64,000 bases of DNA from Eutreptiella sp. 'Long Island Sound 2002' (GCA_964036045.1 OZ038378.1:200012001-200076000); one strand, 5' to 3'; positions 1-64,000 are shown, counted from the first letter of the stretch. The notes: a model not told the origin generated them from the letters alone. Program-made: numbers and translations.

Positions 1-22
1 TTAGCCGTCCCCCCACCCACAC

Positions 23-272
23 ACTGCAGGCCACCGAGCCGCAGGAGTTGGCCATTGGTCCTTGGCCGCCGCGCCTCGACCTCGGTCGTCGTCCATACCC
101 CACCACAACCACTGCAGGCCGCCGAGCCGCAGGAGTTCGCCCTTGGTCCTTGGCCGCCGCGCCTCGACCTCGGTCGTCGTCCATACCCCACCACAACCAC
201 TGCAGGCCGCCGAGCCGCAGGAGTTCGCCCTTGGTCCTTGGCCGCCGCGCCTCGACCTCGGTCGTCGTCCAT
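23..272. repeat. 88-bp tandem repeat, about 3 copies plus a degenerate partial copy to about 350
   Basis: ACTGCAGG recurs at 23, 111 and 199 with near-identical intervening sequence. Confidence 0.9.
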
Positions 273-554
273 CCCTCACCCCTCCCCAGCTACTGCTAGC
301 CCTTGAGGCGCAGAAGTCTGCCCTTGGTCCCCGGCCGTTGCGCCTCGACCAGGGTCTACGTTCATACCACGCGGTGGCATCAAGTGGGCCCGCGCAGGAA
401 CCCAAGGAGGAATCGGCCTACCACTTCGAGTATCGGGGTCCGGGACCAGATTGTCCTCCTGAGTTGTGGTCACCAACAAGTGCCCATCGAACTGCACCTT
501 GTGGACCACGCAAGAGGCCACAACCTTTAACCGTGCTAAGGCAGCCTCCTACAA

Positions 555-1199
555 ATGGCCCAGCATCCTGAATGGCCCCCATGGGACACCATGGAAGCTG
601 CCCAGATGAAAATGGGATTCCGTCTAGCCCTCGGCGAGGCAGGGTGGCATGCCCCACCAAAACAGGAGGCCATCTATTACAGGAAGTTGGCAATGTACAT
701 GGGGACATGTTCCCTTGATGTCGTCCATACCCATGGACTTGCAGCACTGTGCCGCCTGATGTACAGCCAAGAGGGCAGTCCAAAGTGCACGCGGGAGGAT
801 GGAGGTGTTGTTGTGGAGTACCAGAAGGTAGCCTCAGGCCTCTGGGACCGGATAAAAAAGTATGAGGAAGGCTGTGGGAAAGTGGGGAGTCGACGAGGGG
901 CCATTGGTGGACACCCCATGAGCGTTAGCAAAGTTGCTTGGCTAGAGGCATGGAATGACATTGTGTATGCCTTGCCACTTGTGGACTCATGGCCTTTCTG
1001 GAGAGGGGAGACCAAGTACCCCACACCCACTGTGGAGAGGATGTATGTGGAGAAAGTACGGAGAGTACCCTTGGGCAGGATGCAGTACTTTTGGCCACAG
1101 GCAGCAAGTGCAGCACGGCCATTCACAAGTGATTTGGTGGCATCTGCGAGCCGCCGGAACTCACTGTTGCCGGCCAACGGGGAGGGATCGAAAACATAG
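555..1199 (+). CDS. Hypothetical protein, 214 aa (probable transposon cargo)
   Basis: Uninterrupted ATG-TAG ORF with globular-looking, W/Y-rich composition, co-oriented with the cargo block. No family recognised. Confidence 0.45.
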   Translation: MAQHPEWPPWDTMEAAQMKMGFRLALGEAGWHAPPKQEAIYYRKLAMYMGTCSLDVVHTHGLAALCRLMYSQEGSPKCTREDGGVVVEYQKVASGLWDRIKKYEEGCGKVGSRRGAIGGHPMSVSKVAWLEAWNDIVYALPLVDSWPFWRGETKYPTPTVERMYVEKVRRVPLGRMQYFWPQAASAARPFTSDLVASASRRNSLLPANGEGSKT

Positions 1200-1200
1200 G

Positions 1201-1302
1201 GGACCCCAGGATCCGGGGGTGGTCGACAAAGAGTGTCAGCGCCAGTCGGTGGCACAGGTCCCCCTGGCCAGGGGACCCCTGGATCCGGGGGTAGTCGACG
1301 GA
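1201..1302. repeat. Two near-palindromic about 30-bp copies, 72 bp apart
   Basis: GGACCCC(A/T)GGATCCGGGGGT(G/A)GTCGAC at 1201 and 1273, each centred on GGATCC. Confidence 0.8.
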
Positions 1303-1379
1303 GCTCCCTGTTGCCCGAAAGCTCAACGTCCACTTGCAGTCCTGGACCTCAACCCTGCATCCCACCCAATCCAGCACCT

Positions 1380-1778
1380 ATGACGGTGCGGCTGACGAGA
1401 CAGCAACAGTTCGACCAAGCACTGACGACAACGTGCCGTGGCATTGCCCGGTGTGTCCGCATTGCGATGCAAGGCTTGGGGGAGCAACGGCGGGAGCCCC
1501 TGTCAGAGGAGAGCCTGGTGGCTGCCTATACGGTGGGACGCCACTTTGCAGAGTCCATGCGGATTCCCATGCAAGAGAGTAGCGATGTGATACTGAGGTG
1601 CACCCCTTTCGAACCCGAGGTACCCCGCAACCACTTGGGATACCTGCATGCTGGTGTCCGTGTGGTGAATAATGCATGGACAGATGATGCAGGGGAGGTG
1701 GCCATGGAGCTTCTATTGGAAGCCATGGCAGACGCTGGGGTGCAACCCCCCCCCCCCCCCAGGACCCCCGACACCTAA
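1380..1778 (+). CDS. Hypothetical helical protein, about 132 aa (probable cargo)
   Basis: ATG at 1380 gives MTVRLTRQQQFDQAL...AMELLLEAMADAG, ending at TAA 1776-1778. Confidence 0.4.
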   Translation: MTVRLTRQQQFDQALTTTCRGIARCVRIAMQGLGEQRREPLSEESLVAAYTVGRHFAESMRIPMQESSDVILRCTPFEPEVPRNHLGYLHAGVRVVNNAWTDDAGEVAMELLLEAMADAGVQPPPPPRTPDT

Positions 1779-2080
1779 CCAAGATCCCCCCAGAGGCGAT
1801 CCAAGCCAGTCCGACGTCCTAGCCTGTGCGCTGCGACTCGGATCCCAAGATGCATTTGTCGGTGTCCCTGATGACAACGGTACGCCCAACGATGCATGTG
1901 CTATGCACCTGGAAGGGGGCACAAAGGAGGCCATAGGCACAGCTGGCACCCTTGGTGAAGCACAACAACCCCCCCACCCCACCCCCCCCTGCCTCCACTC
2001 CTATGACTACTGACCAGGATCCCCGCAGAGGTGATCCAAGTGCGTCCAACGTCCCAGCCTGTGCGCTGCGATGTGGACCC
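1779..2080. repeat. About 65-bp duplicated segment (1779-1845 and 2011-2077)
   Basis: ACCAAGATCCCCCCAGAGGCGATCCAAG...GCCTGTGCGCTGCGA versus ACCAGGATCCCCGCAGAGGTGATCCAAG...GCCTGTGCGCTGCGA. Confidence 0.75.
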
Positions 2081-2286
2081 CCAGGTGCACCCGAAGTTGC
2101 AGGCGGTGTGCATGCTGACAATGAGAACCAGGGCCGAGAGGTAATGGAGAACATAGGGCCAGGTGCTGCAGAAGAATGCCTCACCCCACACCCCGGTTGC
2201 GGTGCTGAGTCACTCTCTGATCATGTTCCCCTGTGCCCCTAGCACAGCGCCCACCACAGGTTTCATTGAGTGGGCAAGATAGTGAA

Positions 2287-3681
2287 ATGGCATCCCCAGA
2301 TATGGATAGCAGTATGGGGACGGCATGCACTGTCGTGGCACCTAGTCAGTCCAGCACGGATGGCTCAGAGCCATGTAACAGCCCCCCCTCAAGCAAGAAA
2401 GCAATGCCTAGGGATCCCAACCCCATGCCTGCTGCAAAGCGTGTGCGGCTAGGGGCGGATGGGGCCGCAGCAATTGACTGTGACAATCCTAACCAGAAGG
2501 TTGAGGAGGATAAAATCAAGGCTCCTGCCAGTAGGGAGCTGCCTACCATCCGGCAACTGAAGTTACGGTTGGCACGTGATGAGTATGTCGCCGGTGCATG
2601 TTTTTTTTATGCAACTGCCCTCAGCCTCCATGCGCTCCGCAGTGAGACCCCCTTAACTGGAGTGGACCTCCGAGTCCAGGCAACCACAATGTACAGGGAA
2701 CGGTGTGGGATAGAGGTTAAGGAGAGTGCTCTAAGTGTTTGTAGGGCCTTGGAAGCGAATAATTGGGAAGGGAAGCCCTGGGGGGGAAGGCCCGACCATT
2801 TTCGACATCTCGCCCACCACATCGATGGGAAGGTTGTGTTGTTGCGTACAAACACACCCAAAATAATGGATTCAAGGTTTGGCCCGGACACTGCTGTGAC
2901 GTCTGCTGCAGTTTGGAGTCCGGGTATGGGAGAAGCCAAAGTGTACCGTACAATCCAGGAGATGGAGGAAGCTTGTGAACAAGCATGCGTGATCGTCGTT
3001 GGTGAGGCCGAACGTGATGGGCATCGGCCGGGAGGACATTACCGGGGCGCCAGCTACGACCGCTGGTTGCAGGTAGCACCTTTGTGTGTCTTGCATGGCA
3101 TAATGGGGACACTGCTGTACACTAGAGAGACGTTAGGACAGTTCTCCTTGCGAAGGCTGCAGTTGGGTGTCGGTGGGAGCAAAGGACATACAGCGAAAGG
3201 GGATTGTCGCCGGTCGCGGCTTGTGCAAGGGACACAGGAGCATGGCCCCCTTGTGATGATGGTGAACCGCATTGCAAGGAAGTTGGTACCAAAGTGGTTC
3301 ACATGGACTACAATACAGCTGTCATGCAATGAGACGACAGCTCCCCATCAACATCGTTTTGATAGTACCCCGTGGTCAGTAGTGTTCTCCACGGGGCGGC
3401 ACGTGGGTGGTGAGATCTGGGTGGAAGAGGGAGGCGTTGGCAGTGGTCCACATGGCAGACCAGGGAGAAGGCAGTGCCCAGATGGCATTAGCCGTCCGGG
3501 GCATAGGTACCGTGTCGATAGGCAACCTGTAGTGGTCCGCACTGGGGCATGGCATGCTACTTGCCCATGGAAGGGGGATAGGCGATTGGTGGTGCTTTAC
3601 GGCCGTGGAGAGTGGCAGAGTTTGCCTGCTTCACACCGCAAGTTCTTGCAGCAACATGCCTTCCGCCTGCTTGCAGGTTAG
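2287..3681 (+). CDS. OTU-like cysteine protease fused to a 2OG-Fe(II) dioxygenase (TET/JBP/AlkB-like fold)
   Basis: OTU-like motifs: VAGACFFYATA (Cys at 2599), WGGRPDHF and GGHY (His at 3037). Dioxygenase motifs: TTIQLSCNETTAPHQHRFD (His at 3346; HxH where HxD is expected), GGEIWVEE, and WHATCPWKGDRRLVVLY (distal His at 3553, 2OG-binding Arg about 3580). Confidence 0.7.
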   Translation: MASPDMDSSMGTACTVVAPSQSSTDGSEPCNSPPSSKKAMPRDPNPMPAAKRVRLGADGAAAIDCDNPNQKVEEDKIKAPASRELPTIRQLKLRLARDEYVAGACFFYATALSLHALRSETPLTGVDLRVQATTMYRERCGIEVKESALSVCRALEANNWEGKPWGGRPDHFRHLAHHIDGKVVLLRTNTPKIMDSRFGPDTAVTSAAVWSPGMGEAKVYRTIQEMEEACEQACVIVVGEAERDGHRPGGHYRGASYDRWLQVAPLCVLHGIMGTLLYTRETLGQFSLRRLQLGVGGSKGHTAKGDCRRSRLVQGTQEHGPLVMMVNRIARKLVPKWFTWTTIQLSCNETTAPHQHRFDSTPWSVVFSTGRHVGGEIWVEEGGVGSGPHGRPGRRQCPDGISRPGHRYRVDRQPVVVRTGAWHATCPWKGDRRLVVLYGRGEWQSLPASHRKFLQQHAFRLLAG

Positions 3682-5065
3682 TGGCGGTCCGCAAGGTGGA
3701 GCACGGCAACGGCCATGTGGCATGGCGAACCCCCCAAGTCACAATTGGTGTTGGCTTGGTACAACGTTGCAATGCCTCCTGTTAGCCTCTGGGGGACAGG
3801 AGGCCTTCCATGATGAGTGCCCAGATGATGTGGCAGTGTGGGCTACATGTTGGGGTGACGTTGTGGCAGGTATGACAGGTGCTGTGTACCGTCCACATGC
3901 CGTTGCGTGCCTGCTGGCGGATGAGGGACAGCCAACTGTTACTCTGTGCCAGTGTAGTGGTCGGTGTCAATGTGTCAGGAGGCCTCCCAAGTTTGAGTGG
4001 ATGCAGCAGTCCGAGATGGCTGAGTGTTGGAAGCACATGGTACCGAAACTGGTTCGTGCTGGTGTTCGTTCTCTGTCAGACTGCTTGTCTCATGAGCAAT
4101 GGTGGCAGCGGTGCCCAGTGTGTGACGTGAAAGTCCACCAGGCTGGAGGTGAGTTGGGAATGCCCGCCCAGGTCCTCCATGTTACTAACCAGGGCCAGAG
4201 CGTGCGGGTGCGAATGAGGGAGGGAATGAGGGGCCGTTCGTTGGGCCGCCCTTCAAACGCCCCCCCATGTGGCTGTGGGGGGGATCTCCAGGAGGCCATT
4301 GTACTATCGTCACTAGTGTTCAACAAGTGGGCTCCACTCCATGTCCACAATCAACAGCTTCACAGCTTGACGGTGGATCATGAGTTTGTGGATATCAATG
4401 GGTACCATTGGTCCCTGCGGGCCATGGAGCTACATGTTGGACCAACTAGGGAGCAAGGGCACTTTATTGCTCACATTTTAGTTCGCGATGTGTGGTGGTT
4501 GTGTGATGATTCGTCCGTGAGCAGGGGACGGCCCCCAGCCACTTCACGAAAGGTGACATTCCTATTGTATGAGCGTACTCCCACGGAGATGGTGGGTCTG
4601 TCACAGGGCGGTTCACAAAGCAATCGTCTGCAGTCTGCAGCAACAACTGTCGACAGGCATGCCCGGAGCATGCCAAGTATCACCCCGTTGCGGGCCATGG
4701 CGCTGGCAACAGGTGAACCAGAGTCTACCAACCACATTGGGGACGCACAACCCTCCCCCTCACAGTTTGCAACACCAACTGTCAACAGGCATGCTCCGAG
4801 CGTGCCAAGTGACACCCAGTTGCCAGCCATGGCGCTGCCAGCGGGTGATCCCGGATATGCCACACATGTGGGGGATGTGCAGCCCACCCCCGAGTTTATT
4901 GAAGCTGTGGCAAAGCTTGTACAAAAGCAAAGGGTACGGGTGAAACAGCATCTGCAGGTCCGTGTGCAAGCCCACCAGGCTCATCTCCGGGCACTCATGA
5001 GAAGCAGTGGGATGAGAGGCATGCAGGTCAGGGCATGTCACACCGGTCTGTTTCCGAGTCCATAG
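3554..5065 (+). CDS. USP (peptidase C19)-like deubiquitinase domain plus low-complexity tail; true 5' boundary uncertain
   Basis: Cys box GMANPPSHNWCWLGTTLQCL (Cys at 3749). His box WSLRAMELHVGPTREQGHFIAHI (His at 4460), then WWLCDDSSV and FLLYER. Internal CPVC and CGCG. A roughly 44-aa duplicated segment lies at about 4640-4900. Confidence 0.75.
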   Translation: MLLAHGRGIGDWWCFTAVESGRVCLLHTASSCSNMPSACLQVSGGPQGGARQRPCGMANPPSHNWCWLGTTLQCLLLASGGQEAFHDECPDDVAVWATCWGDVVAGMTGAVYRPHAVACLLADEGQPTVTLCQCSGRCQCVRRPPKFEWMQQSEMAECWKHMVPKLVRAGVRSLSDCLSHEQWWQRCPVCDVKVHQAGGELGMPAQVLHVTNQGQSVRVRMREGMRGRSLGRPSNAPPCGCGGDLQEAIVLSSLVFNKWAPLHVHNQQLHSLTVDHEFVDINGYHWSLRAMELHVGPTREQGHFIAHILVRDVWWLCDDSSVSRGRPPATSRKVTFLLYERTPTEMVGLSQGGSQSNRLQSAATTVDRHARSMPSITPLRAMALATGEPESTNHIGDAQPSPSQFATPTVNRHAPSVPSDTQLPAMALPAGDPGYATHVGDVQPTPEFIEAVAKLVQKQRVRVKQHLQVRVQAHQAHLRALMRSSGMRGMQVRACHTGLFPSP

Positions 5066-8000
5066 AACAAGATAGAGCCCGATCTGCTGCATTGGCAGCA
5101 ACGGGGAGCAATGCTTTTTCTGTGATGATGGGGGCAGCCCCCAGGCAACAGACAGCAGGGCCAAAGACACTGCAAGCGTTTGTGGATGAGCATTGGCAGT
5201 TGCAGTTCACTGCCCAAGGGGGTGTAATGTGCATATGTTGTTCATGGGCTGCTAAAACGGATTGTCCTGGGGTGAAGCGGCCAGCGAAGGCTGCGGCAGC
5301 CTTGGTGAATGGGACATATGGCATGGGCATGCGTATGATGATTGCTACACCAAAGGGATGGCGTAAAGATGTCCTGGAGGGTCACCTTGGTGTGTCACGT
5401 GGCACGACCAGCAGCCGCAAGAAAATTGATAATCCTGGCCGCCAGCACTTGGCCGCTGAGGAGAGTTTCCGGGTGCATTGTGCAGAACGTTTTTGGGCAC
5501 TGTGCCCCAATGCATCTGCATCTGCATGTGCAGTCAATGTGGCAGAGAGGAGCACTGTGTTCATTAGGGGTGAGGGCGTGGACCTCGGTGTACCTATGAG
5601 CGATGCGGTGGCAGCCATTTTGTCGCGCTTGGTGGAGGTGTACATTGGCCTCCGCATGTGCACATCCATCCGTGCAATCAGTGAACGCATTCTTCTGCAT
5701 TGTGCGTTTACCTCCGAACCGGGCCATCATGCCTCTCGGCGATGGATAGTTGAGAGGGCCATGGTCGCAATGCATGGCGCCATGCAAGATGGTGTGTCAG
5801 AGACCTTGCAAAGAGCATTGTTCATTGCCTTGTTGTTGGATGGATCTGACCGGCAACGGCATCGCATCAATGAGTATGCCATCCTGCTCCTCTTTCCAGG
5901 CACTGGGCCGGGGGGAATGTGTGAGGTGTTCCTTGGTGTGGTGGATGTAGCTTCAGGGGAGGCACAAGAGGTGACGGCACAGGTGGAGGCAGTGCTGCTG
6001 TCCTGGATGCCTGATCGTGCCTGGTGGGCTCAGAAGGTTGTGGCTTTTGCGGTGGATGGTGCCTCTAACCTTGGTGTGCGTGGTGCCACTGCAAGGCAAG
6101 CTGTTGATGTGTCGGCAATGGAGCACAATGTGTTTGCCATGCTTGTGAAGTGGCTGTCCTTGCTAACCCCCTTGGGTGAGCCATGCCACGTGGTCCAGCG
6201 CAAGCTAGGCCTTGCCTTGGAGGCTGCCGGCCAAGTGCATGCTGACTACCTGGCAGCTGTGGGTCGCCAACGTGCATTGTACAACGGTGCGCGCCAGTGG
6301 AAGGACCTCGAGAGGTGTGTCCAAGAGAACACCAGACCAGATACACGCAGCGGGTTGCGTTTGATCCCTGCTAGTCACCGTATCCGGTGGTCCGAGGCAA
6401 ATGCCCGTCGCAACAAGGTGTTCTTGGCCAATGTGCCATGGGTGGCGAGGCATTTGGATTCCAAAACGCACCTCACCACCAAGGAGGAGGATGTGTGGGA
6501 GGATTGCCATGATGCAGGTTTGCTGTCATGGGCAGTGGTATACGGGGACATACTACATGGTACGCGCAGCTTCAACAACGTTGCACAGTTGCATGCACCA
6601 ACAGGTGCCCACTTGACCAAGGCAACCGAAATGTTACAGGCACGGGTGGAAAAGGTGGCGAGGGAGGAGGGGCCAGGGTGGACTCAATTCAAAGAGCAAA
6701 CTGTGACAGGTGCATGGCATGGCGTTGAATTGGTCCGGTTTGATGCCGATGGCCAGAGGTGCACAACCAGCCCCCCTTTTCCAGCCACAGAGGCACGGGC
6801 AGTCACAGACACACTGCTTGCTGGCATCAAGGAGGGACAGGGTACCATTGACCCCCGGGGTGTTCTTGAGTGTGCTGTGTTGCTTGACCACGGCCGTTGG
6901 CTCGCTCTACCAGCGGCTGGTCGAGCCACATTTGGAGTGGATCTGCTGAAGCAGTTCATGGGCACACACCATGCTGAACTGGCAGCTGCGCATGTTAATG
7001 CTGCTCGTGCATTGGAAGAGTTGGAATCCTTCAAGGAGCATGTCGTGCGGACCTTCGCCAAGACCCCCATGTCCCGGATGTGGGAGGCCTTGACGCCGGA
7101 GCGGGAGCATGTCCAATGGGTGAATGTTTGGCGTGTTTTGGCATTGCTGCGCACATATTGCCCTGCTGAGGCTGCTGTTGAGCGTGCCATTTCGTTGTGT
7201 GGGAGGTTCACCAACAGTATGCATGATATGGAGGACACACATGTCCTTAGCATGTGCATGGCTTTGCATTGTAATCTGCCACCTTTGCGGCAGTGGGCGA
7301 AGGGGCAGGGTGTCGAGGTAGCCAGCAAGCTGGCAGCCAATGCACGCTTCGATGTGCGTCCCCGGCATAGGGTTTCGAATCGCATTGATCCGCGTACATC
7401 AGTGGAAGCGGCCATGTTGCAGTGCCTAGAAGGGGAGGCTGCAGTGGCAGACGATGGTGACATTTTGCCATCTTTTGGGGGGTCGGAAGTGCCACTGGCT
7501 TGTCAAGGCGCAACGCGCAGACGTGCTGACCGACAAGCCCCGTCTGAGCACACTGAGGGCACTTTGGTCGAACCAGATGGTAGTCCTGCTCAGCATGGTG
7601 GCAACCATGACTTCTTCACTTTCCGAAGGGGCATGGACTGTGCAATGTGCAGGCAATCTGTGCGCATCTGGTGCAACACATGTCTGGTTTGCCATATGTG
7701 CTTCGTCAAGGATCCAAGACCGTGTGGTGAGGCAGTGGTGCAGGTTGTGGATGATGCAGCTGAGGCTGCTGAAAACAATAGTGAAGAGGAGGCAGTGGCA
7801 CCACGGAAGTCCGACCCAAAGCGTGCCTTGGCCCGTGCACAGGCCAAGTTGGTATGTGCTGCAAAATCAGGCACATTGCGTGACTGGACACGCGCTCGCA
7901 TCTGTGATTGCTTGGCAAGCATGGGTGTGAAGGTGCCAAATAGCAAGACCCGGGGAGAAGCCCGAGAACTTGCTATGCAAGAGTTGTTGCCTTTGCTAGC

Positions 8001-8124
8001 CCAGATGGACTGTGACTGGGTCCCCCCAACGGATCGTGTTACCCGTTCTGCTGCACCACCCAGCAGCTCACAACCATGTTCCCAAGTGCCGGTGGATGAC
8101 ATGGACGGACTCATTGATGAATGA
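5035..8124 (+). CDS. hAT-superfamily DDE transposase with N-terminal Zn finger and C-terminal Cys-rich and HeH/SAP-like extensions
   Basis: N-terminal CICC...HL...QH. Catalytic-type motifs LLLDGSD (D at 5839), AVDGASN (D at 6055), EPCHVVQRKLGLA at the CxxH position, IRWS, and hATC-like CPAEAAVERAISL...LHCN (E at 7180). C-terminal CAMC...WCNTCLVCHMC...C, then WTRARICDCLASMGVKVPNSKTRGEARELA. Confidence 0.85.
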   Translation: MSHRSVSESIEQDRARSAALAATGSNAFSVMMGAAPRQQTAGPKTLQAFVDEHWQLQFTAQGGVMCICCSWAAKTDCPGVKRPAKAAAALVNGTYGMGMRMMIATPKGWRKDVLEGHLGVSRGTTSSRKKIDNPGRQHLAAEESFRVHCAERFWALCPNASASACAVNVAERSTVFIRGEGVDLGVPMSDAVAAILSRLVEVYIGLRMCTSIRAISERILLHCAFTSEPGHHASRRWIVERAMVAMHGAMQDGVSETLQRALFIALLLDGSDRQRHRINEYAILLLFPGTGPGGMCEVFLGVVDVASGEAQEVTAQVEAVLLSWMPDRAWWAQKVVAFAVDGASNLGVRGATARQAVDVSAMEHNVFAMLVKWLSLLTPLGEPCHVVQRKLGLALEAAGQVHADYLAAVGRQRALYNGARQWKDLERCVQENTRPDTRSGLRLIPASHRIRWSEANARRNKVFLANVPWVARHLDSKTHLTTKEEDVWEDCHDAGLLSWAVVYGDILHGTRSFNNVAQLHAPTGAHLTKATEMLQARVEKVAREEGPGWTQFKEQTVTGAWHGVELVRFDADGQRCTTSPPFPATEARAVTDTLLAGIKEGQGTIDPRGVLECAVLLDHGRWLALPAAGRATFGVDLLKQFMGTHHAELAAAHVNAARALEELESFKEHVVRTFAKTPMSRMWEALTPEREHVQWVNVWRVLALLRTYCPAEAAVERAISLCGRFTNSMHDMEDTHVLSMCMALHCNLPPLRQWAKGQGVEVASKLAANARFDVRPRHRVSNRIDPRTSVEAAMLQCLEGEAAVADDGDILPSFGGSEVPLACQGATRRRADRQAPSEHTEGTLVEPDGSPAQHGGNHDFFTFRRGMDCAMCRQSVRIWCNTCLVCHMCFVKDPRPCGEAVVQVVDDAAEAAENNSEEEAVAPRKSDPKRALARAQAKLVCAAKSGTLRDWTRARICDCLASMGVKVPNSKTRGEARELAMQELLPLLAQMDCDWVPPTDRVTRSAAPPSSSQPCSQVPVDDMDGLIDE

Positions 8125-8523
8125 CAGTGTTGGGGTTGCAGTGGTATTGTGCTTTTGCATGCCTGCTGTGCCAATCCCCATGTTCTCCTTCTCTGCAGGT
8201 CCATTGATACATTAGCAAGCATCAGTATGCAACGTTTTCCCAGTTCCCTTGGTTTTCCCTTTTCCCACATTTTCCCCAACGCCCCATTTTCCAAGAGGTA
8301 TGGGTGTTTTTTTTGGGGGGGGGGTACTTGTGCTACATTGTTCCCAGAATTGCCTTTTCCGCATTTTCAAACCCCGTTTTCCCCCCAACCCAACCCATCA
8401 TTTTCTTGAACTGAATGGTTGTGTGTTTTGGGGGCGGGGCCTTGTATCAGACTTTTCCTAGTGTTCCCTTCTCCACATTTTCCATTCCAACCTATTTTCC
8501 CTGACGCACAATTTTCCCGAGGT

Positions 8524-8700
8524 GAAGTTCCTCTGTGTCTATGGGGGGTGGGGTATTGCACTTTTATCCCCATTTTCCTGTGAAGTTGCTATGTGTCTTT
8601 GGGGGGGGGGGGGTCTGCACTGTTATAACCATTTTCCTGAACCCAAGTTCCTGTGTGTGTGTGTGGGGGGGGGGGGCTGCACTTTTGCACTTTTATCAGA
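8524..8700. repeat. About 58-bp degenerate tandem repeat x3 (putative subterminal repeats)
   Basis: AAGTT(C/G)C...TGTG...G-run...TGCACT(T/G)TTAT..CCATTTTCCTG units start at about 8524, 8582 and 8645. Confidence 0.7.
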
Positions 8701-9349
8701 CTTTTGCTTGGATGTGCTCTAATGTGGGTCCGCAACACGACATGCCAAATCAGACTTCAGACTTCAGACTTTATACCCATAGCTGGTGATCAACGCGATG
8801 AGAAGGCCATTTCAAGCCATATATGTAGGGGTGTGGAGCCCCCCCCCCCTCTAGCTGGCCCCCTAACCCCCTCACCAGACCCAACCCCCCCCCCCTGAAA
8901 GTGGCACGGAAGCGGGAAGGCGTATGACCCGTTGCTGCGACCCCCCGTGCCCCTGATGCCCCAGAAGAGCCCAGACCCTGCGGACGCAGCTGCAGTTGCA
9001 GTGCGCCACGTGACACGCTAGGATGGTCAGGCCTTGCAAGCGCTGATCGAGAGCTGCCCCCGCCCTCGACCTCAACAGCCCAATGATCCCCCGAGGGGGC
9101 AACAAATCCATCACCTTGCACCGCAGTACCACAAGCAATGTTCGGGTTGTCGTGACGAGGCCTGCTTTCAGCAATTCTTCCAACAGTAACAAACTGCGAA
9201 CCAAGCTACTCGCTGCAACAGCACATAGTGCAAGAAGCTGGACAAACAAGTACAATCTACTGAAGTTGTAGTGGAGTTGGGGAGTGTATTAGTTGCCGTC
9301 TTTTCCCAGTATGACCAAGGAGCTGAGGCAATGCTTGAAGACACTTTTC

Positions 9350-16562: not shown

Positions 16563-16635
16563 ACAAACCCCGGTCAAATGGTAACGCAGCTGACTGTAGA
16601 TTTTTAGGTTGGCGGTTCGAATCCGGGTTGGTGGA
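16563..16635 (+). tRNA. tRNA-Tyr(GTA)-derived pseudogene or SINE head
   Basis: A-box-like GGTCAAATGGTA, anticodon arm GACTGTAGAT, and perfect B box GGTTCGAATCC. The T-stem and acceptor stem pair poorly, so this is probably not a functional tRNA. Confidence 0.55.
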
Positions 16636-16739
16636 CAGTTCTCTGCGGTGCCGCCGCCATGTTCGCCCGACCGGACCAAATCTGCGGTCCACTGCATTCC
16701 CATTCGACCACTGCATGCCCTAAGAGACGCAGTCCTCCC

Positions 16740-16876
16740 CACTGCTTGGATCCGAGTCTGCCGCTGACAAAAAACCCAAAATGTGTTTCTATCGGACTGA
16801 CTGCTGGCCTGGCTAACTGACTGATTGGCTGACTGTCAGCCTCTCTTCGAGGTGCACTGCCAAAGGCAATAGAATT
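16740..16876 (+). repeat. About 137-bp dispersed repeat (inverted copy at 60914-61052)
   Basis: CACTGCTTGG...CTGACAAAAAACCCA...GACTGACTGCTGGCC...CCTCTCTTCGAGGTGCACTGCC..GGCAATAGAATT matches the reverse complement of 60914-61052. Confidence 0.9.
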
Positions 16877-16983
16877 TGCTGAGTGGCAGTGATTAAGAGT
16901 CGTTCATGCATCATAGTTTGTTTGTGCGAAGAAGTCGACACAACAATCATTCGCCCCAAAGCCCCACATTTTGGTATAGCAAT

Positions 16984-17387
16984 ATGTTCCGTTTGGCTAT
17001 TGTGGCGGCTCTTGTGCTACTGAGCTTGGTCAGCATTGACGCAGGCTGATGCGGAGTGAATTGGAAAGATGCATTCACGAAATGCTCCAACACCCTCTGT
17101 GTGGAAGTTGATGAGCCATGCCCGCATGGAGAGACATGCTTCTAGATCTTTTCCCCTGACCTATGCTTTCGCAATCGCTGCGGCATTACGTGGGAAGACG
17201 CCAACGCGAAGTGCAGTGGGACCCTGTGCAACCCGGATGACATGCCTTGCCCGGCTGGAGAGCAGTGATGGAAGGATGTTGAGATCTGTGGGAATGGTTG
17301 GGGTCAATCTGGTACGGACTAATCGACGCCAACAAGAACTGTGAGAACGAGAAGTGCGCCGGAAGGAAGGCCCCAACATTGTTCTAA
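16984..17387 (+). pseudogene. Secreted Cys-rich repeat protein pseudogene
   Basis: Signal peptide MFRLAIVAALVLLSLVSIDAG, then two repeats of CGxxWxDAxxKCSxTLCxxxDxPCPxGExC and a frameshifted third. In-frame stops TGA, TAG, TGA and TAA. Confidence 0.75.
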
Positions 17388-18279
17388 ATCTCCTTTTCCT
17401 CAGAAAAGATTGCTGACCTGGCAATAGTGGCTTTTGACCATCGGGCGCGGCGGGGCCCCTCCCCCACCGCGGGCATGGGACGGAGCGCGGCAGAGAGCCG
17501 CGGCAGCAAAAACATGACGCTTTCTTCCAAATGATTAGACAGCGTCAGAACACCCCCCGACCCGGCCGGAGGTGCCCGCTGGGTGTCCCGTAGGTAGGGT
17601 ACGTGGGGTATATTCGGAATTCCCTCAATAAGGGCCCGCCGGAGATGTATGCGGTAGGGGGGTGTCCAGAACTGTATTTTTTCCGAAATTGGCTGTCACC
17701 GTTGACAATTTGGGGTTTTTGCCTGTTTTGGTCAGGTTTCAAATATTCTTGCCCCCCCCCCCCCCCCACACTCCATCACCACGTGCGCTTTTGGGGGAGG
17801 TTGAGGCACCGCCTCCCCTATTTTTGGGGCGGGCAGTTCGGAAAAGAAGTTTCAGAGAACGTTGGGATAGTGGGTGATCTGTACGAGGGCAAAAACTATG
17901 AAAAAATGGGTATGACATGGTACGGCTCACATCACCAATTTTGTCCCTAAGTTGCCTACTTTTAGCAATCTGTGTAGGATGATGTCATGCCCTATTTTTC
18001 GCCCTTGCTAACCCCTTGCTGAGGCCCAAAACCCACCCCTATCCATACAAATACCTTCCACAACAGTTTTTTCTTTTTCGCTCCCCACCTTCAGATTAGG
18101 GGGGAGGGTGGCCTTACTTCCACACATTGAAGCAAAACTTGCCAAACTTCCCAAAAAGTGCCAAAACCCTCCGCGTTGCTGATCTGCTTCACTTGAAGAT
18201 CAAGGGCAACAGCAAGCACACATTACCCCCTGGCTTGTCCCAAGCACTGCAAAATGCCTGCGTGGTCACAGCAGCATTA

Positions 18280-18800
18280 GTGGTCAGGTGGGCTTTGGGG
18301 GTGGTCAGGAACTCAAATTTCATTGTTCCAGTTTTGTGTTGTGCCTGTTGGGGGAATGATGCGAAGGCTGCCCAGAGTCTACTGTGCTACGGTTTGGCAA
18401 GAGGAGGGAGCCGGGTTGACGCTCGTGCACCCATATTCGAACACCTTGCGGTCTTGCAGGTCTTGAACACATGAACGGGCCCTATTGTCGCCCCTTCCGT
18501 CTCCTTGATGCCCACTCCAGATGACAGGTGCCGCGCACCTGCGCATACCGCAGCAGACAGTTCACCGGACCTCCGAACCCCCGAGCACTGGGCGTTGATA
18601 TGGCGGGAGCTGCGGTTCGCCTACCAAATGTGCCTTTTGAAAAGCGCCGTGCTCACGGCGACACTCGGAGCCAATGCAGAGGTGGGGCTGGAGCGGTTTC
18701 ACTGCGCCTTTGCCCGGCTGTATTTCCGCCTCCTGACGTTTGGGTGGGCTGAAGACCAGTTCGCAGCGCAATTCCATCGTTTTTTGCAGGTCTGGCATAG
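18280..18800 (+). pseudogene. Possible Penelope-like RT motif B to thumb remnant
   Basis: RNSNF...WGNDAKAAQSLLCY (PMG-like), RVD, and LERFHCAFARLYFRLLTFGWAEDQFAAQFHRF (thumb-like). Confidence 0.25.
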
Positions 18801-21374
18801 AAGGATTACGGGTTGGGTGACCGGAAAATTGCAGTTGTAGAGGGGGAAGGACGTGTAAGCCCCTGACCGCTGGGAGGGCCCTTGACTGGAGATTTCAATG
18901 TACAACACACCCCTTGTGGATGTACAATGGGGGCGTACCGTGCGCTGTGCGCGCGCTGTGCGAAAAGTTGGCTGTTCTCCACCACCGGGAGTTCAGTAAG
19001 TTCAGAAGATTGAAAGGACGTCATTCAATGGCTGCTGCAGTGGACGGGGCTATAGGGGGCACAATTTAGGTACCTGGGACCCATGGCAAGCATCAGATGT
19101 TTGAATTTTTGAGTTTTGAATTGATTGTGCATGATTCCGCAGGTGCGTGGTTTTCAGGGTTTCCACCTGGATAATCACCGTAATAATTGGCGCTGTGCCC
19201 GCGCTGTGCCCGCGCTGTGCGAAAACGCCCCCAATAACCCCCTTTGTCGATGTACAATATCCCTCTTGACTGGAGTTGTTCACGCAATACACCCTCCCTT
19301 GGAAAGTTGACGTTCGGGACCCACAATTTGGCCCTCCTTCGAATTTCTTTTTGAACAGGAGGTTCTCCTCAAAAAGGAGATTCAATGGCCACTGGTTTTA
19401 AAACTAAGATCCTCAGAATTTTTACCGTTGGGTTACCCTGAATGGCTTGCCTGGGGCGGGTCCAACCAGCAAAACGCAGGGTGGCTTTTTCGGTACCCGC
19501 CCCCTTTTTTGGACCCTCCCAAAATAGCAACATTGGATGGCTTTTTGCTTTTTGTATTTTTTGTCGTGTTTCACGGTTTTCATCGTGTTTGATCCCAAAT
19601 AGCTTTCTAAATGGCCTCTTTGGGAGGTGGGAAAAGGGTTTGCGGTGCGTGTGGGGATTGGAATGGGTATGGGTATGGGCTGAACCCTTTTGCCAGGCCA
19701 CCTCAACGCCAGGCCACGCTGGGCGCATGCTTGGAGGATCCTGGTTGCCTCTTCGGGTTCTCGAGGCCTGTGGGGTGGTGCCACTGCCGCCTTCGTAATA
19801 GAGGGCAGAATACCCCAATGGGAGATGTCTGTTTGGAGCATTGCCTGATGTAGTGTGGCACAGTCCTTGATGGCTGGTAGAGTTTGTCATGTGTTTACGC
19901 AGGCGAACGACTAGTGCTGAGGTTGTTGATTCTATGTACACCAGGTGCAGGTGGATGTGGAAGACGAGGTATATGATGGAATAGGAGGTGGGACTGCAAT
20001 GTGCCAGGTGTGAACATGACTCATTTTTAGGGCAAGGTGGGTGCTGTAGGGTAGAAATTGCATGCATGGTTGGAGGAGCGATGCCCATGCCCCCAAGTTT
20101 TGGTCCTCTGGGGTGTGCAAAATTTGTACAGTGAGGCCTCAAAGGATCAAGGAAGCATACACGGGGGGTTGGTATCGAAGGGAACTGGCAAGCGAAAGTG
20201 GAGTCGCTGTATTTGCAATGTGGTACATAATTCTAGGCTCACATGAGTGGTCAAGAGGTGTACAGGGGTATGGCGGTCATACCAAGCTACTGATTGGAGG
20301 TGTGGCCAGTGTCTGAGTATGATTGGGATCTCGTGTAATGGGGCCTACATTCACACGTGTTGCAGAGGCCAGGCAATCGGATGGGAGCACGAAATTGGTG
20401 GTCCCCAGCAGGTCGCACCTGGGAAAGCCACTGTGGTCACTAGATTTCACCTCTCTCTGCCTCTACGCGTCACATTACTGAAGACACAGGTCGTATGTAC
20501 TGTCTTACAACAGAAGGAAGCTACTTCCCTGAGAGCAAACCGTTTGGTCCCTGAAAGACATGGCCCAGCTCGCCTTGAGCACTGACGGGGGGGGGGGTCC
20601 ACAGGAGAGCGCCTCGCTGGAGAGTCTTGTTTGAAAGGTAATCATCGGTTGCCGACCACAAGGGTATGGCTGCACAGTCACTTTGGTCTGCCTTTTCACA
20701 CACTGTTGCTGAATTTGTTGAATCCCCCTCCCCCCCCCCAGGATCCTTTAATCAGGGACACACAAGCATTGTGCATGCACTTTGCATCTTCTTCCTGTCG
20801 TATGTACCTTTGCAGTGCAATGCCTCGGTTCGCTGTGCTGGTGTGTGGGCCTGCTGCCCAATGAACTGCACAGCAACGTTTTGTTGGTGTTTCTGTGTTT
20901 TATGTTCTTCAATCCATCACGTTTGTTTGCATCTTTTTGTTTCTTTGTTTATTTGTTCTCTTTCAAGTCTAGGAATCAGGTCAAAGCATTCCCAATTTTG
21001 TGTGGGAAGTCACATTCCAGAGTGTCCACAGCCACGATGAGGCCTTGCCTTACTCCAGGATTCAACAGATCGAGTTTTCTTTGCCCATACATCGAACGCT
21101 TGATACTTTTTTGATCCCCCCCCCCTATCCCTTGCACAAACCACGCTCTGATCAATCCACGCGCTCTCCGATTCCTGCAAGTTTTTGGGACTGTAAATCA
21201 CGGTTCTATATTTTTTGTATTGTTGCACCTCATGCGGCTTGGGCAAGCCGCCGTAACGCATTTCTCTGGAGATTTCAGCCGCACGTGATGTTCTAGCAAA
21301 TAGGTTCAACTAGTAGGCCTGCTCAACAAAAAGGTGATGCGCTATCATGCTGCACTCTGGCCGCCTTCTCCCAG

Positions 21375-26589: not shown

Positions 26590-26940
26590 CACGGGGGGGG
26601 CGGCCGGGCCGGGTCCTTGTATGCGACCCCCCCCTCCCCCCCCCCCCCCCCGGGTTTTGAAAGATAGTGGTGCCGGGTCGGCCCCCAACAAATGTCCCTA
26701 GAGAAAACTGTCCGGCGCCCAAGGCGCCAATTTTTTTTTTTTCATACTATGTGTTTATACTCAAAATACTCAAAATTTGTAGAGAATTCATATTTGTGTT
26801 AAAACAACAAGAAAAATGTTTGACCTGAAGGAGGGCTACAGGAGGGCTGCAAGCCCTAACAGCAACCCTAGCCCTAACCCTAACCCCTAACCCCTAACCC
26901 TAGGGCTAACCCTAACCCTACCCTTAACCCTAACCCTAAC
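26590..26940 (+). mobile_element. Second copy of the 363-bp hAT-type MITE; left TIR present, right TIR not found; ends in a CCCTAA array
   Basis: Starts CACGGGGGGGGCG and is nearly identical to 35133-35463 over about 330 bp. Expanded (C)CCTAA repeats at about 26854-26940. Confidence 0.8.
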
Positions 26941-27599
26941 CCCCCCCCTCCTCACCCCTGGCTGGACGCCCCCCTGACCCCCCGGCCAGACCCCCCCCCC
27001 GACCCCCGGCAGGAACACCCCCCCCCCCCGACCCCCGGCAGGAACACCCTCCCCCCCCGACCCCGGCTGCCCCCCCCCCCCCCCCCCCCCCTCAGCGGTG
27101 GCGGCCGGGAACGGGCGTCGCAAGTGCCGGACCTCCACTTCAAAATCCGCAATTTAGGGCCAAAATCAGCCTTTTTTTGTCCAAAACTGCCCCAGAACCT
27201 GCTGAAAACGGCCGAACGAAGGGAAATAGTGGCTCCTCTACACATGCAGCTAGACTTCCCCGTGCCAAAGGGCCCTCTAGGGCCCTCTGACTCCACAATA
27301 TGTCCGCAAACCGCCCCCAAAAGGCCTCCAAAAGCCCGGAATTTGTGCACATTGGCCGCCGATAGCCCCAATCCAAAAACAGACCATATTTGGGGCTACG
27401 CGGCTCAAAACACGATTTCGAGCGCACCTAATCCACCCGCAACCACCCACTTTTGGGGGTTTTCACCCCTCAAAAATGCCCTAACCGACACCTAGACCCC
27501 CGTACCTCGGCCCAGTGGGCTGCGGCAAGCTGCAAGAGGTAGCCCAAAAAGGTGGGTGCCAAAATGGGTCAACAAGGTCCACCGGGTGCAAAAAAAAAA

Positions 27600-33128: not shown

Positions 33129-33945
33129 CCCCTTCAAGACAATGCCCCCCTTCAAGACAATGCCCCCCCTTCAAGACAATGCCCCCTTCAAGACAATGCC
33201 CCCCTTCAAGACAATGCCCCCCTTCAAGACAATGCCCCCCTTCAAGACAATGCCCCCCTTCAAGACAATGCCCCCCCTTCAAGACAATGCCCCCCTTCAA
33301 GACAATGCCCCCCCTTCAAGACAATGCCCCCCCTTCAAGACAATGCCCCCCCTTCAAGACAATGCCCCCCCTTCAAGACAATGCCCCCCCTTCAAGACAA
33401 TGCCCCCCCTTCAAGACAATGCCCCCCTTCAAGACAATGCCCCCCCTTCAAGACAATGCCCCCCCTTCAAGACAATGCCCCCCCTTCAAGACAATGCCCC
33501 CCTTCAAGACAATGCCCCCCCTTCAAGACAATGCCCCCCCTTCAAGACAATGCCCCCCTTCAAGACAATGCCCCCCCTTCAAGACAATGCCCCCCCTTCA
33601 AGACAATGCCCCCCCTTCAAGACAATGCCCCCCCTTCAAGACAATGCCCCCCCTTCAAGACAATGCCCCCCCTTCAAGACAATGCCCCCCCTTCAAGACA
33701 ATGCCCCCCCTTCAAGACAATGCCCCCCCTTCAAGACAATGCCCCCCCTTCAAGACAATGCCCCCCCTTCAAGACAATGCCCCCCTTCAAGACAATGCCC
33801 CCCCTTCAAGACAATGCCCCCCCTTCAAGACAATGCCCCCCTTCAAGACAATGCCCCCCCTTCAAGACAATGCCCCCCCTTCAAGACAATGCCCCCCCTT
33901 CAAGACAATGCCCCCCTTCAAGACAATGCCCCCTTCAAGACAATG
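33129..33945. repeat. Intronic minisatellite: TTCAAGACAATG plus C5-C7, about 44 copies (estimated from length)
   Basis: An invariant 12-mer separated only by C-runs of variable length. There are no unique spacers. Confidence 0.97.
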
Positions 33946-35132: not shown

Positions 35133-35495
35133 CACGGGGGGGCGGCCGGGCCGGGTCCTTGTATGCGACCCCCCCCAGCCCCCCCCCCCCCCCCCCCCCC
35201 GCCCCCGGTTTTTGAAAGATAGTGGTGCCGGGTCGGCCCCCAACAAGTGTCCCTAGAGAAAACTGTCCGGCGCCAAAGGCGGCAATTTTTTTTTTCATAC
35301 TATGTGTTTATACTCAAAATACTCAAAATTTTGTAGAGAATTCATATTTGTGTTAAAACAACAAGAAAAATTTTTGACCTGAAGGAGGGCCACAGGAGGG
35401 CTGCAAGCCCTAACAGCAACCCTAGCCCTAACCCTAACCCTAGGGCTAACCCTAACTCTACCCGCATCAGGACCGTTGGTAGTCGCCCCCCCGTG
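35133..35495 (+). mobile_element. hAT-type MITE, 363 bp, with internal telomere-type repeats
   Basis: Perfect 12-bp TIR CACGGGGGGGCG / CGCCCCCCCGTG. Exact 8-bp TSD GGAGCGGC at 35125-35132 and 35496-35503. CCCTAA repeats at about 35408-35456. Confidence 0.92.
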
Positions 35496-39180: not shown

Positions 39181-39436
39181 TATATAGGGACGGTTTGTGA
39201 TGGGATTGTGTGCATGTGATTGCACAGTTATTTGACGGGAGCCATGCTGACTGCATGTGCATGTTAAACTTTTGACCCTTTGAACCAAGAGGTTTCTCCG
39301 TGGCACATTAGGGCACAATCTGCACCAAACTGCACAACGGGATCTACACGTGCCCCAGAAGTTTTGGAACAGAGCTTCGCCCAACCCCTTTCATTCGACT
39401 CACGTGCTTTGCCTCAGAATCTTTACAAAAGGTGTC

Positions 39437-62898: not shown

Positions 62899-63218
62899 GT
62901 ATGATCACCCACGGCTTTGTGACGGACATCCGCGCATGGACGTGCTGTTGGGGTTTGCTGAAACCGACCTCTGGCGACTGACCGCCTCCACATGCAAATG
63001 CTGACTGCACCTTTGGCCGCTGATTGGAATTTGCTGGTGAAGAAACCAAACACAGTTTGGGGGGTGTACAGGTTCCTCACACCCGGGAGCTTTGGCGATC
63101 CCATTCCGAAGTGACACAGAAGAAAAATGAGGTCAGTTCCCTGGGAGGGCTAAATCCAGGCGTCACCACTCCCCCCACCCCAACACACACACCACCCCAT
63201 TACGTCCCACCCCATAAT

Positions 63219-64000
<782 letters not shown>

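Follow-up and report, generated by a model that had tools for sequence, protein, structure and literature searches.

A high-copy, multi-gene hAT-like DNA transposon family in Eutreptiella sp. with putative deubiquitinase and nucleic acid dioxygenase functions

The 64,000 nt stretch of Eutreptiella sp. 'Long Island Sound 2002' DNA analyzed here (GCA_964036045.1 OZ038378.1:200012001-200076000, referred to as the window) appears to carry, at positions 1–8785, the right-hand 8.8 kb of a single copy of a high-copy cut-and-paste DNA transposon family of 18–19 kb. The probability of this reading is put at roughly 0.7. The family is a real, recently active, multi-gene transposon that is bounded by terminal inverted repeats (TIRs) and shows hAT-type mechanics. 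The window holds the right ~45% of one copy and the remainder of the element lies outside. An initial annotation, made from the window sequence, had described a giant hAT transposon with deubiquitinase-like and TET-like functions. The core of that idea is retained but its boundaries, intactness and architecture are not, and the OTU and hAT labels are provisional. The open reading frames (ORFs) that it listed on the + strand (positions 555–1199, 1233–1778, 2233–3681, 3554–5065 and 5035–8124) are present as described and are part of a repeated mobile element.

The window sequence shows 96.7% identity to a second locus, L001, from position 11 to position 8785. It shows 85% identity to L003, and this alignment also stops at 8785. 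A divergent subfamily, represented by L002/L011, aligns at 64–70% identity (L002) and displays conserved reading frames in the same order. The right ends of four copies share the sequence ...ATCAGAC(T/A)TCAGAC..TTTATACCCATAGCTG, which is followed by unrelated flanks, and divergence of the flanks begins directly past ...CCCATAGCTG. The right end of the element is set at 8785 because homology between copies stops there. The span of 1–8949 proposed initially is thus not maintained: the left end is situated more than 10 kb upstream, beyond the window, the start of the element is not near position 1, and the element is twice the size given to it. The window begins with 88-bp tandem repeats that are found at the same place in L001 and L003; the window therefore starts inside the element.

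In L001–L003, the 10 kb preceding the transposase contain neither the reverse complement of the right end nor a target-site duplication (TSD), because the element is longer than 10 kb. At seven further loci, found by means of a short ORF, similarity starts at a single point, CAG(C/G)(T/A)(A/T)TGTGTATA, which is the right end inverted. The TIRs are 14 nt long and have the sequence CAGCTATG(G/T)GTATA or CAGGATTGTGTATA. All three complete copies, which come from the same assembly, display perfect 14-nt TIRs together with perfect 8-bp TSDs; the chance of a perfect 8-bp TSD match is ~1.5e-5 per copy. Six more element ends have unrelated flanks. Short repeats of the form (A/T)TCAGAC are found beside both element ends, e.g. 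three heptamers at 8749–8769 in the window, and complete copies carry these heptamers close to their left end as well. The left TSD copy of the window element is outside the window. An attempt to enlarge the TSD sample by way of a short ORF near the right end gave one contig only.

Shared termini, which the initial annotation expected upstream, are thus present in the complete copies, but they differ from the CACGGGGGG that it read as the TIR. This motif was rejected as a terminus, as homology of the copies stops at 8785 and the motif is common in a window rich in G/C runs. At a tolerance of one mismatch the window contains 47 occurrences, against an expectation of 33. A virus-like or Polinton-like nature was likewise considered and rejected: capsid, polymerase and integrase are lacking and the TIRs and TSDs are clear.

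The element proteins form clusters (90% identity) of 231, 215 and 144 members, nearly all of them from one ENA assembly (ERZ25074135), and a cluster look-up gave one 185-aa JGI fragment beside the ENA members. Word-based searches of 5.8 billion proteins returned 12, 39 and 14 proteins, all of which are ENA entries and all close copies of the element. Scans of IMG/VR with the ORF4 and transposase profiles gave no relatives, nor did a JGI metagenome scan with the transposase profile. An Rfam scan of the window gave no match, and 316 kb of sequence from the window and other loci contained no relics of the dinoflagellate spliced leader. In L001, helicase-like fragments are found at 16598–18966 on the − strand, ~3 kb downstream of the L001 copy and inverted; these are probably the left arm of an oppositely oriented neighboring copy. 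In L009, an unrelated ORF of 1764 aa or more, for which no Pfam family is recorded, takes the place of the left arm at positions 1–4773, and homology to other copies starts only at L009 5182.

All genes of the element are found on one strand as uninterrupted ORFs. The gene order in L011 is a 152-aa ORF, a 270-aa ORF, a 1319-aa helicase, a tandem array, a 345-aa ORF, ORF4, and the USP/transposase ORFs. The gene set given by the initial annotation is therefore incomplete, as a helicase and more proteins with no assigned function are also encoded. The 152-aa and 270-aa proteins have no assigned function and are both situated in the left part, outside the window. The 1319-aa ORF shows a superfamily 1 (SF1) Upf1/Sen1-like helicase core (Pfam AAA_11, 1e-15, and AAA_12, 4.3e-11), and its closest solved structures in the PDB are Sen1-like 5′-3′ helicases (9e-11). 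The helicase gene is also outside the window. L012, a decayed copy of the window's own subfamily, retains remnants of the 152-aa gene and of the helicase in the same order, and a protein-level comparison of L003 with L002 shows collinearity across the helicase gene upstream of the array. The expectation that other copies would show the same gene order is borne out: the linkage of the accessory genes with the transposase is found in two subfamilies. ORF1 and ORF2 of the window have no Pfam match. The stop of ORF4 and the start of the USP-transposase ORF are 37 nt apart (window 3679–3721), and the position of the stop is conserved in the other subfamily. The G+C content of the element region is 56–61%, with a GC skew that is steadily positive from 2 to 8 kb (0.125–0.141) and negative in the 8–10 kb bin.

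Upstream of ORF1, every copy carries the 88-bp repeats and then a tandem array. The array unit is 41 bp in the window's subfamily, where the array extends to at least 9.85 kb in L004 (4–9858). The other subfamily has a partly palindromic unit of 52 bp and an array 1.9 kb long (L011 10347–12252). The 41-bp and 52-bp units are alike around an AT-rich core (...CCGTGAATTATTT... and ...CCGTCAAATATTT..., respectively). Array length varies between copies from ~2 kb to more than 9.8 kb; expansion of the array can lengthen some copies beyond 18–19 kb, and the array could act as a seed for satellite DNA.

The 1029-aa ORF that was initially taken as an intact transposase makes up the C-terminal 70% of a fusion protein of 1473 aa, its start at 5035 being an internal Met of that protein. 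A continuous USP-transposase ORF of 1347–1505 aa is found in P0209 (1473 aa), P0203 and P0213, all three from the window's 90% cluster, and in L008 (1505 aa), and the in-frame fusion of the USP to the transposase is present in both subfamilies. Residues 1–430 of P0209 correspond to window positions 3722–4993 in frame 2 and residues 432–1473 to 4996–8121 in frame 1; there is therefore a frameshift at ~4993–4996 in the window copy. The window copy is slightly decayed, with two frameshifts and one in-frame stop. The second frameshift is near position 2230 in ORF4, where the first 33 codons are in frame 2 (2144–2233) and the remainder is in frame 1 (2227–3681); it is seen by tblastn of P0014, and the 512-aa form is present in several copies. 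The in-frame TAG at 1197–1199 splits ORF1 from ORF2, which in L011 form one ORF. Other copies show deletions: L008 is without ORF1, ORF2 and ORF4, and L007 is without the segment from ORF1 through the USP. Close copies differ nearly neutrally, as is expected after insertion.

The ubiquitin-specific protease (USP, peptidase C19) assignment is supported by the sequence and is accepted here. The 503-aa ORF of the window matches Pfam UCH at 26.2 bits against a cut-off of 23.9 (E-value = 7.6e-6), over the His-box part only, and P0012 matches at 27.3 bits. This is the sole Pfam match among the window ORFs; the 1029-aa and 482-aa ORFs have none at E-values up to 1, and PDB searches with the sequences of these two ORFs likewise yielded no relevant match. 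USP5 and USP36 give weak His-box matches in the PDB. The USP region of L008 shows 51% identity between the subfamilies, with the Cys box, QGHF, WWLCDD and the CxC/CxxC pairs conserved; the assignment of the catalytic boxes is our own reading of the motifs. Thus the USP motif noted initially stands but the domain is not separate cargo, as it forms the N-terminal domain of the transposase protein.

ORF4 appears to join two domains. The N-terminal domain carries, by eye, the family motif forms DxYVAGACFFY, GG.P.HF..LA..V.G.VVLL and GGH(F/Y)RG, which follow the order and spacing of the OTU motifs (G-A-C-F-F-Y-A, GG..HF..LA....VVLL, GGH(F/Y)RG). Cys21 is invariant in 9 aligned full-length copies, and a few copies, which are probably decayed, carry another residue in place of the His. 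The domain is under purifying selection (pN 0.34, pS 0.78, the proportions of nonsynonymous and synonymous differences). Several results weigh against an OTU deubiquitinase. Pfam OTU (PF02338) is unmatched in 14 family members at E-values up to 10, a 21-sequence profile gives no PDB match, and the AlphaFold predicted local distance difference test score (pLDDT) is below 50 for most of the domain. In addition, no distant homologue of the N-terminal domain turned up among 1.84 billion representative proteins. Thus the motifs of the initial OTU call are present but the hidden Markov model (HMM) search and the structure prediction do not bear it out. A papain-like Cys/His domain is plausible, and OTU membership, for which the motifs alone speak, is unproven. 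It is quite possible, while not the favored view, that the domain is a different papain-like protease or a non-enzyme. AlkB and OTU domains are paired in plant-virus replicases, and some matches among the viral models of BFVD cover both domains of such AlkB+OTU replicases, which would favor an OTU protease; the root-mean-square deviation of these matches is very high and they are a lead only.

The C-terminal domain of ORF4 is predicted to be a 2-oxoglutarate (2OG)-Fe(II) dioxygenase. A profile of the ORF4 core gave 204 matches in the same 1.84 billion representative proteins, and the distant ones are confined to positions 230–380. The consensus of the distant homologues is WTS...N....PHxDxxN...GGELWVE...WH.T.PW.G.R. 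The first His is kept in 62 of 63 distant homologues and the distal His in all 63; the Arg occurs in 60, and the Asp in 55, with His taking its place in the other 8. In the element the metal motif reads HxHxxD instead of the HxDxxN of the wider family, a seemingly paired change that both subfamilies have in common (alignment A7). With a 90-sequence alignment, AlphaFold gives a pLDDT of 88–98 for the dioxygenase. The Foldseek matches in the PDB are CcTet (2.6e-5), AlkB (1.4e-4), CMD1 (6.5e-4) and TET2 (1.2e-3), with ALKBH5 between AlkB and CMD1. The best named matches in BFVD are JBP1/TET oxygenase domains and AlkB proteins. Thus the modeled fold, and with it the predicted class of nucleic-acid-modifying enzymes, are well supported.

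Strict membership in TET/JBP is not well supported. The protein of the element gives no match to Pfam Tet_JBP (PF12851). A sequence profile built from the domain brings CcTet into register at the metal motif, with a non-significant E-value of 0.38. A Pfam scan of 52 homologues left most of them unmatched; RVT_2 was found in 5, rve in 3, zf-CCHC in 1, 2OG-FeII_Oxy_3 in 1, and Tet_JBP weakly in 2 (E-value = 0.0026). The initial claim of a TET/JBP-like dioxygenase is thus upheld with respect to the fold but not with respect to a canonical HxD or the Tet_JBP HMM. The family of this dioxygenase comprises more than 140 diverged proteins (P0101–P0197 among them), mostly unrecognized by Pfam. Several of the homologues sit inside Copia-type polyproteins, and the domain recurs in unrelated transposon classes.

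The replacement of the canonical Asp by His also counts against a working dioxygenase, as an enzyme with HxH may show altered chemistry or inactivity. The domain might therefore not edit 5-methylcytosine (5mC), and be instead an AlkB-like repair enzyme or RNA demethylase, acting on N6-methyladenosine (m6A), 1-methyladenosine (m1A) or 3-methylcytidine (m3C) in element DNA or transcripts, or a non-catalytic binding module. This is considered rather doubtful, with a sizeable minority chance. AlkB-type enzymes (AlkB, ALKBH5, ALKBH2) nearly equal CcTet in the fold comparison, and the best BFVD matches include viral AlkB proteins. AlkB domains have also been reported from retrotransposons and, alongside OTU, from plant-virus replicases (PMC9289625, PMC544882). 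On the other side, the top structural matches, the sole near-threshold profile match (CcTet) and the Pfam matches of relatives lean toward TET/JBP, the distal His and the 2OG-binding Arg are retained, and an acidic residue follows the HxH. The HxH of the 8 distant homologues mostly has an acidic residue 2–3 positions on, and its occurrence there suggests a functional variant and not decay.

The transposase probably works like a hAT enzyme of the DDE type, because of the D..D..E spacing of ~72 and ~375 residues and the 8-bp TSD. These candidate motifs, read by eye, are conserved in alignment A5, and a Cys-rich C-terminal segment starts at 7639. Their layout (DGSD, DGASN at +72, VERAIS at about +375) resembles that of the hAT elements, especially Buster; the spacing is likened to the D-D-E of Hermes and Ac and the motifs to the DESTD/TDGA blocks of Buster-type hATs. 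At the termini, the short TIRs begin with CAG and have short repeats beside them at both ends; they agree with hAT 5′-YARNG at Y, A and R, but position 5 is T or A, not G. Target sites, in a small sample, show T at position 2 in 5 of 9 and A at position 7 in 4 of 9, a weak tendency toward the nTnnnnAn preference of hAT elements.

Homology searches weigh against the hAT assignment. No Pfam match, including Dimer_Tnp_hAT (PF05699) and other hAT-linked families, was found for the whole transposase, 9 relatives or 9 sub-fragments at E-values up to 10. No PDB match, including Hermes, was found with the sequence or with a 10-sequence profile at E-values up to 10. The AlphaFold model from 10 close sequences is unusable (pLDDT 31.5) and its Foldseek matches are meaningless. 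The hAT label of the initial annotation thus agrees with the TSD, the TIR and the motif layout but not with the hAT HMM search or the structure prediction, and is kept as provisional, resting on the TSD, the TIR and motifs read by eye. The alternative is that the element belongs to another superfamily with 8-bp TSDs (Zisupton/Dileera of KDZ, P, or Novosib) or to a superfamily of its own. The word-based search is in line with this, as relatives of the transposase are almost solely in one assembly, and so is the fifth TIR base. Zisupton and Dileera also have 8-bp TSDs and are carriers of TET/JBP genes (PMC12730594). But the KDZ transposase and CxC Pfam domains are also unmatched in the transposase, the 8-bp TSD being the only shared trait, and together with the hAT-like motif layout, termini and target sites this makes the alternative unlikely. 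A more speculative and quite tentative proposal is that the family is a deep, unsampled lineage of DNA transposons with hAT-like mechanics and a transposase beyond current profiles. Such a lineage would carry a multi-enzyme counter-silencing kit of a tethered USP, an OTU-like/HxHxxD dioxygenase fusion with a possibly distinct base-modifying activity, and an Upf1/Sen1-like helicase, with the dioxygenase family present within Copia-type polyproteins as well.

The two subfamilies differ at ~30–35% of nucleotides. Between them every ORF shows pN 0.20–0.36 and pS 0.65–0.81, and the transposase gives dN/dS of 0.14–0.16 against the other subfamily. For the other ORFs the Nei–Gojobori (NG86) dS is saturated between subfamilies, so the pN/pS proportions and codon-position mismatch were used. 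Nucleotide-only alignments show a mismatch of 0.49–0.63 at codon position 3 and 0.20–0.34 at position 2; for ORF1/ORF2 the values are 0.61–0.63 and 0.23–0.34. The 3′ non-coding region shows a mismatch of 0.48–0.56 at all three positions, with no periodicity. The helicase fragments give pN 0.35 and pS 0.68, with the qualification that local protein alignments bias pN downward. All ORFs thus evolved under purifying selection between the two subfamilies, so the accessory genes were maintained along active lineages. Since this selection persisted while the subfamilies diverged to synonymous saturation, the accessory proteins probably serve the element.

One copy speaks against a necessary role. 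L008 lacks ORF1/ORF2 and the OTU-like/dioxygenase gene yet has a perfect TSD. As L008 transposed without them, the ORF1/ORF2 and ORF4 genes are dispensable in cis, and copies of the L008 type are presumably helped in trans. That the accessory genes are mere passengers, i.e. captured host genes with no function for the element, fits L008 and L007 and the common capture of genes by DNA transposons, but is improbable given that gene order and content are conserved across two subfamilies with saturated synonymous sites, that in each of the ORFs pN is well below pS and codon-position periodicity is seen, that the USP is in-frame with the transposase in both subfamilies, and that no free-standing host paralogues turned up, close matches all being element copies.

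The preferred reading, that the accessory proteins serve the transposon, suggests a mechanism of self-protection. The dioxygenase would most likely oxidize a modified base (5mC, or N6-methyladenine (6mA) or an alkylated base) on element DNA or RNA. The oxidation could counter methylation-based silencing in a CpG-depleted host. The transposase-tethered USP, perhaps joined by the OTU-like domain, would remove ubiquitin from the transposase itself or from chromatin or repair factors at the site of transposition. The observed/expected ratio of CpG is 0.60 over the window as a whole (0.53 within the element and 0.61 outside it) and 0.61–0.62 in other copies, while GpC is ~1.0 and TpG/CpA is in excess. 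In the differences between the window and L001, polarized with L003, C-to-T changes at CpG are 2.8 times as frequent per site as at other C/G sites. CpG depletion and C-to-T bias are the usual footprint of CpG methylation, pointing to such methylation in the host and to a substrate for a TET-like enzyme.

Table 1. Positions of the element features (window coordinates unless a locus is named) and the complete copies
Feature	Position or size	Strand	Details
88-bp tandem repeats	1–373	+	Four copies (5–373); internal to the element, just 5′ of ORF1
ORF1 (555–1196) and ORF2 (1200–1775)	555–1778	+	Function unassigned; one 345-aa ORF in L011
ORF4	2144–3681	+	512 aa in intact copies, e.g. P0014; cluster of 144, several of them 512 aa long
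Papain-like Cys/His domain with OTU-like motifs (plausible)	2539–3138	+	Alignments A4, A8
OTU-like motifs	2599–3039		DEYVAGACFFY, Cys 2599–2601; WGGRPDHFRHLA..VVLL from 2779; GGHYRG, His 3037–3039
Predicted double-stranded beta-helix 2OG-Fe(II) dioxygenase, TET/JBP-AlkB-like	3151–3678	+	
Dioxygenase residues			H-Q-H-R-F-D 3346–3363; distal His 3553–3555; Arg 3580–3582
USP (peptidase C19) domain and linker	3719–4993	+	N-terminal 430 residues of the fusion
USP motifs			Cys box NWCWLGTTLQCL from 3743; zinc-ribbon CxxC pairs 3947–4280; His box QGHF 4454; WWLCDD 4493
Frameshift splitting the USP-transposase ORF	4993–4996	+	Frame 2 to frame 1
Transposase part of the fusion	4996–8124	+	Candidate D269 LLLDGSD (5839–5841), D341 FAVDGASN (6055–6057), E716 AAVERAIS (7180–7182)
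3′ non-coding subterminal region	8125–8771	+	Degenerate T-rich/G-run repeats; no codon periodicity
Right TIR	8772–8785	−	Reads CAGCTATGGGTATA inward; the identical 14-mer is the left end of L012
Presumed right TSD copy	8786–8793		GTGATCAA; 8 bp abutting the right end, by analogy with the three complete copies
Tandem array in L003	L003 3660–5774		
Complete copy L011/L002	18,636 bp		TSD ATGCCCCG at both ends
Complete copy L008	18,195 bp		TSD AGGCGAGT at both ends; both TIRs CAGGATTGTGTATA
Complete copy L012/L003	19,255 bp		TSD CCGGTGAA at both ends; both TIRs CAGCTATGGGTATA; window's own subfamily

The rest of the window shows features outside the element. Homopolymers of at least 10 nt consist of 39 G or C runs and 6 A or T runs. 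A 19-bp tandem array is found at 33140–33900 and (TC)n/(TCTG)n microsatellites at 63200–64000. A 933-aa ORF at 39350–42151 (+ strand) displays an NAD:arginine ADP-ribosyltransferase domain (PF01129, 5.6e-12) and at least 10 ankyrin repeats; the 99-bp tandem repeats at 41027–42118 are the ankyrin units of this ORF. Direct repeats of ~350 bp at 26594–26950 and 35136–35480 are 95–100% identical, are 8.55 kb apart and contain CCCTAA-like telomere motifs. They may be the long terminal repeats (LTRs) of another element.

Every ingredient of the transposon has a published precedent; the combination is unusual. The novelty claimed initially is weakened, as hATs that carry TET/JBP genes (PMC12730594) and associations of OTU, Ulp1 and C19 proteases with transposases (PMC2836005) are already published. 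A literature search gave no report of a USP fused to a hAT-like transposase, of an OTU-like/dioxygenase fusion in a transposon, of an Upf1-like helicase in such an element, or of all three together. Most records of TET/JBP enzymes carried by transposons so far come from fungi, and fusions of proteases with transposases have been described, although what they do is not understood. Here a tethered USP, an OTU-like/dioxygenase fusion and a helicase appear to form one selected unit in hundreds of copies. The family thus offers a natural system for testing whether mobile elements counteract host control both by DNA methylation and by ubiquitin. The dioxygenase family is nearly invisible to Pfam and is found in DNA transposons and Copia-type elements, and may be a wider, overlooked transposon tool. 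The transposase would illustrate the drift of hAT-like sequences past existing profiles, which is relevant to repeat annotation.

Teratorn, reported as a fusion of piggyBac with a herpesvirus (180 kb), is also an oversized cut-and-paste transposon with many extra genes (PMC5601938). It carries a whole virus genome, whereas the present element has 6–7 genes and no capsid, polymerase or viral hallmark. Replicases of Betaflexiviridae and related plant viruses are reported to contain an AlkB dioxygenase beside an OTU protease in one polypeptide (PMC544882). These are large proteins of RNA viruses in which AlkB is followed by OTU, whereas the 512-aa protein of the present DNA transposon has the OTU-like domain first and the dioxygenase second. 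The likeness is one of architecture, not of demonstrated homology.

Ubiquitin-system cysteine proteases are found in or alongside other transposases. Ginger1 transposases occur with OTU or Ulp1, Mutator-like elements (MULEs) with Ulp1, and animal Helitrons with OTU (Bao, Kapitonov & Jurka 2010, PMC2836005). The same paper reports a Trichomonas vaginalis protein with transposase_11 and peptidase C19, which is a precedent for the C19 fusion, and suggests that the ubiquitin pathway is involved in transposition. The published cases are Ginger, MULE, Helitron and IS5-like elements, whereas in the present element the USP is N-terminal to a hAT-like transposase.

TET/JBP genes are found in seven fungal DNA transposon lineages, including a hAT (hAT7, with a 7-bp TSD), and escape from methylation-based silencing has been proposed for them (Kojima 2025, PMC12730594). 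OTU, ubiquitin and protease are absent from that paper, in which helicase comes up solely in connection with Helitrons. The KDZ elements (Kyakuja-Dileera-Zisupton) of Basidiomycota combine TET/JBP with large DDE transposases, and Zisupton and Dileera have 8-bp TSDs (cited via PMC12730594). The present element differs from KDZ in having no KDZ/CxC Pfam domain, in its hAT-like motif layout and in its host and gene set. The hAT7 of the Puccinia rusts resembles it as a hAT-classified DNA transposon with an extra gene for a nucleic-acid 2OG-Fe(II) dioxygenase (PMC12730594). hAT7 has a 7-bp TSD, a recognizable hAT transposase and a canonical TET/JBP, whereas the element described here has an 8-bp TSD, a transposase that evades HMMs, a predicted HxHxxD dioxygenase fused to an OTU-like domain, and a length of 18–19 kb.

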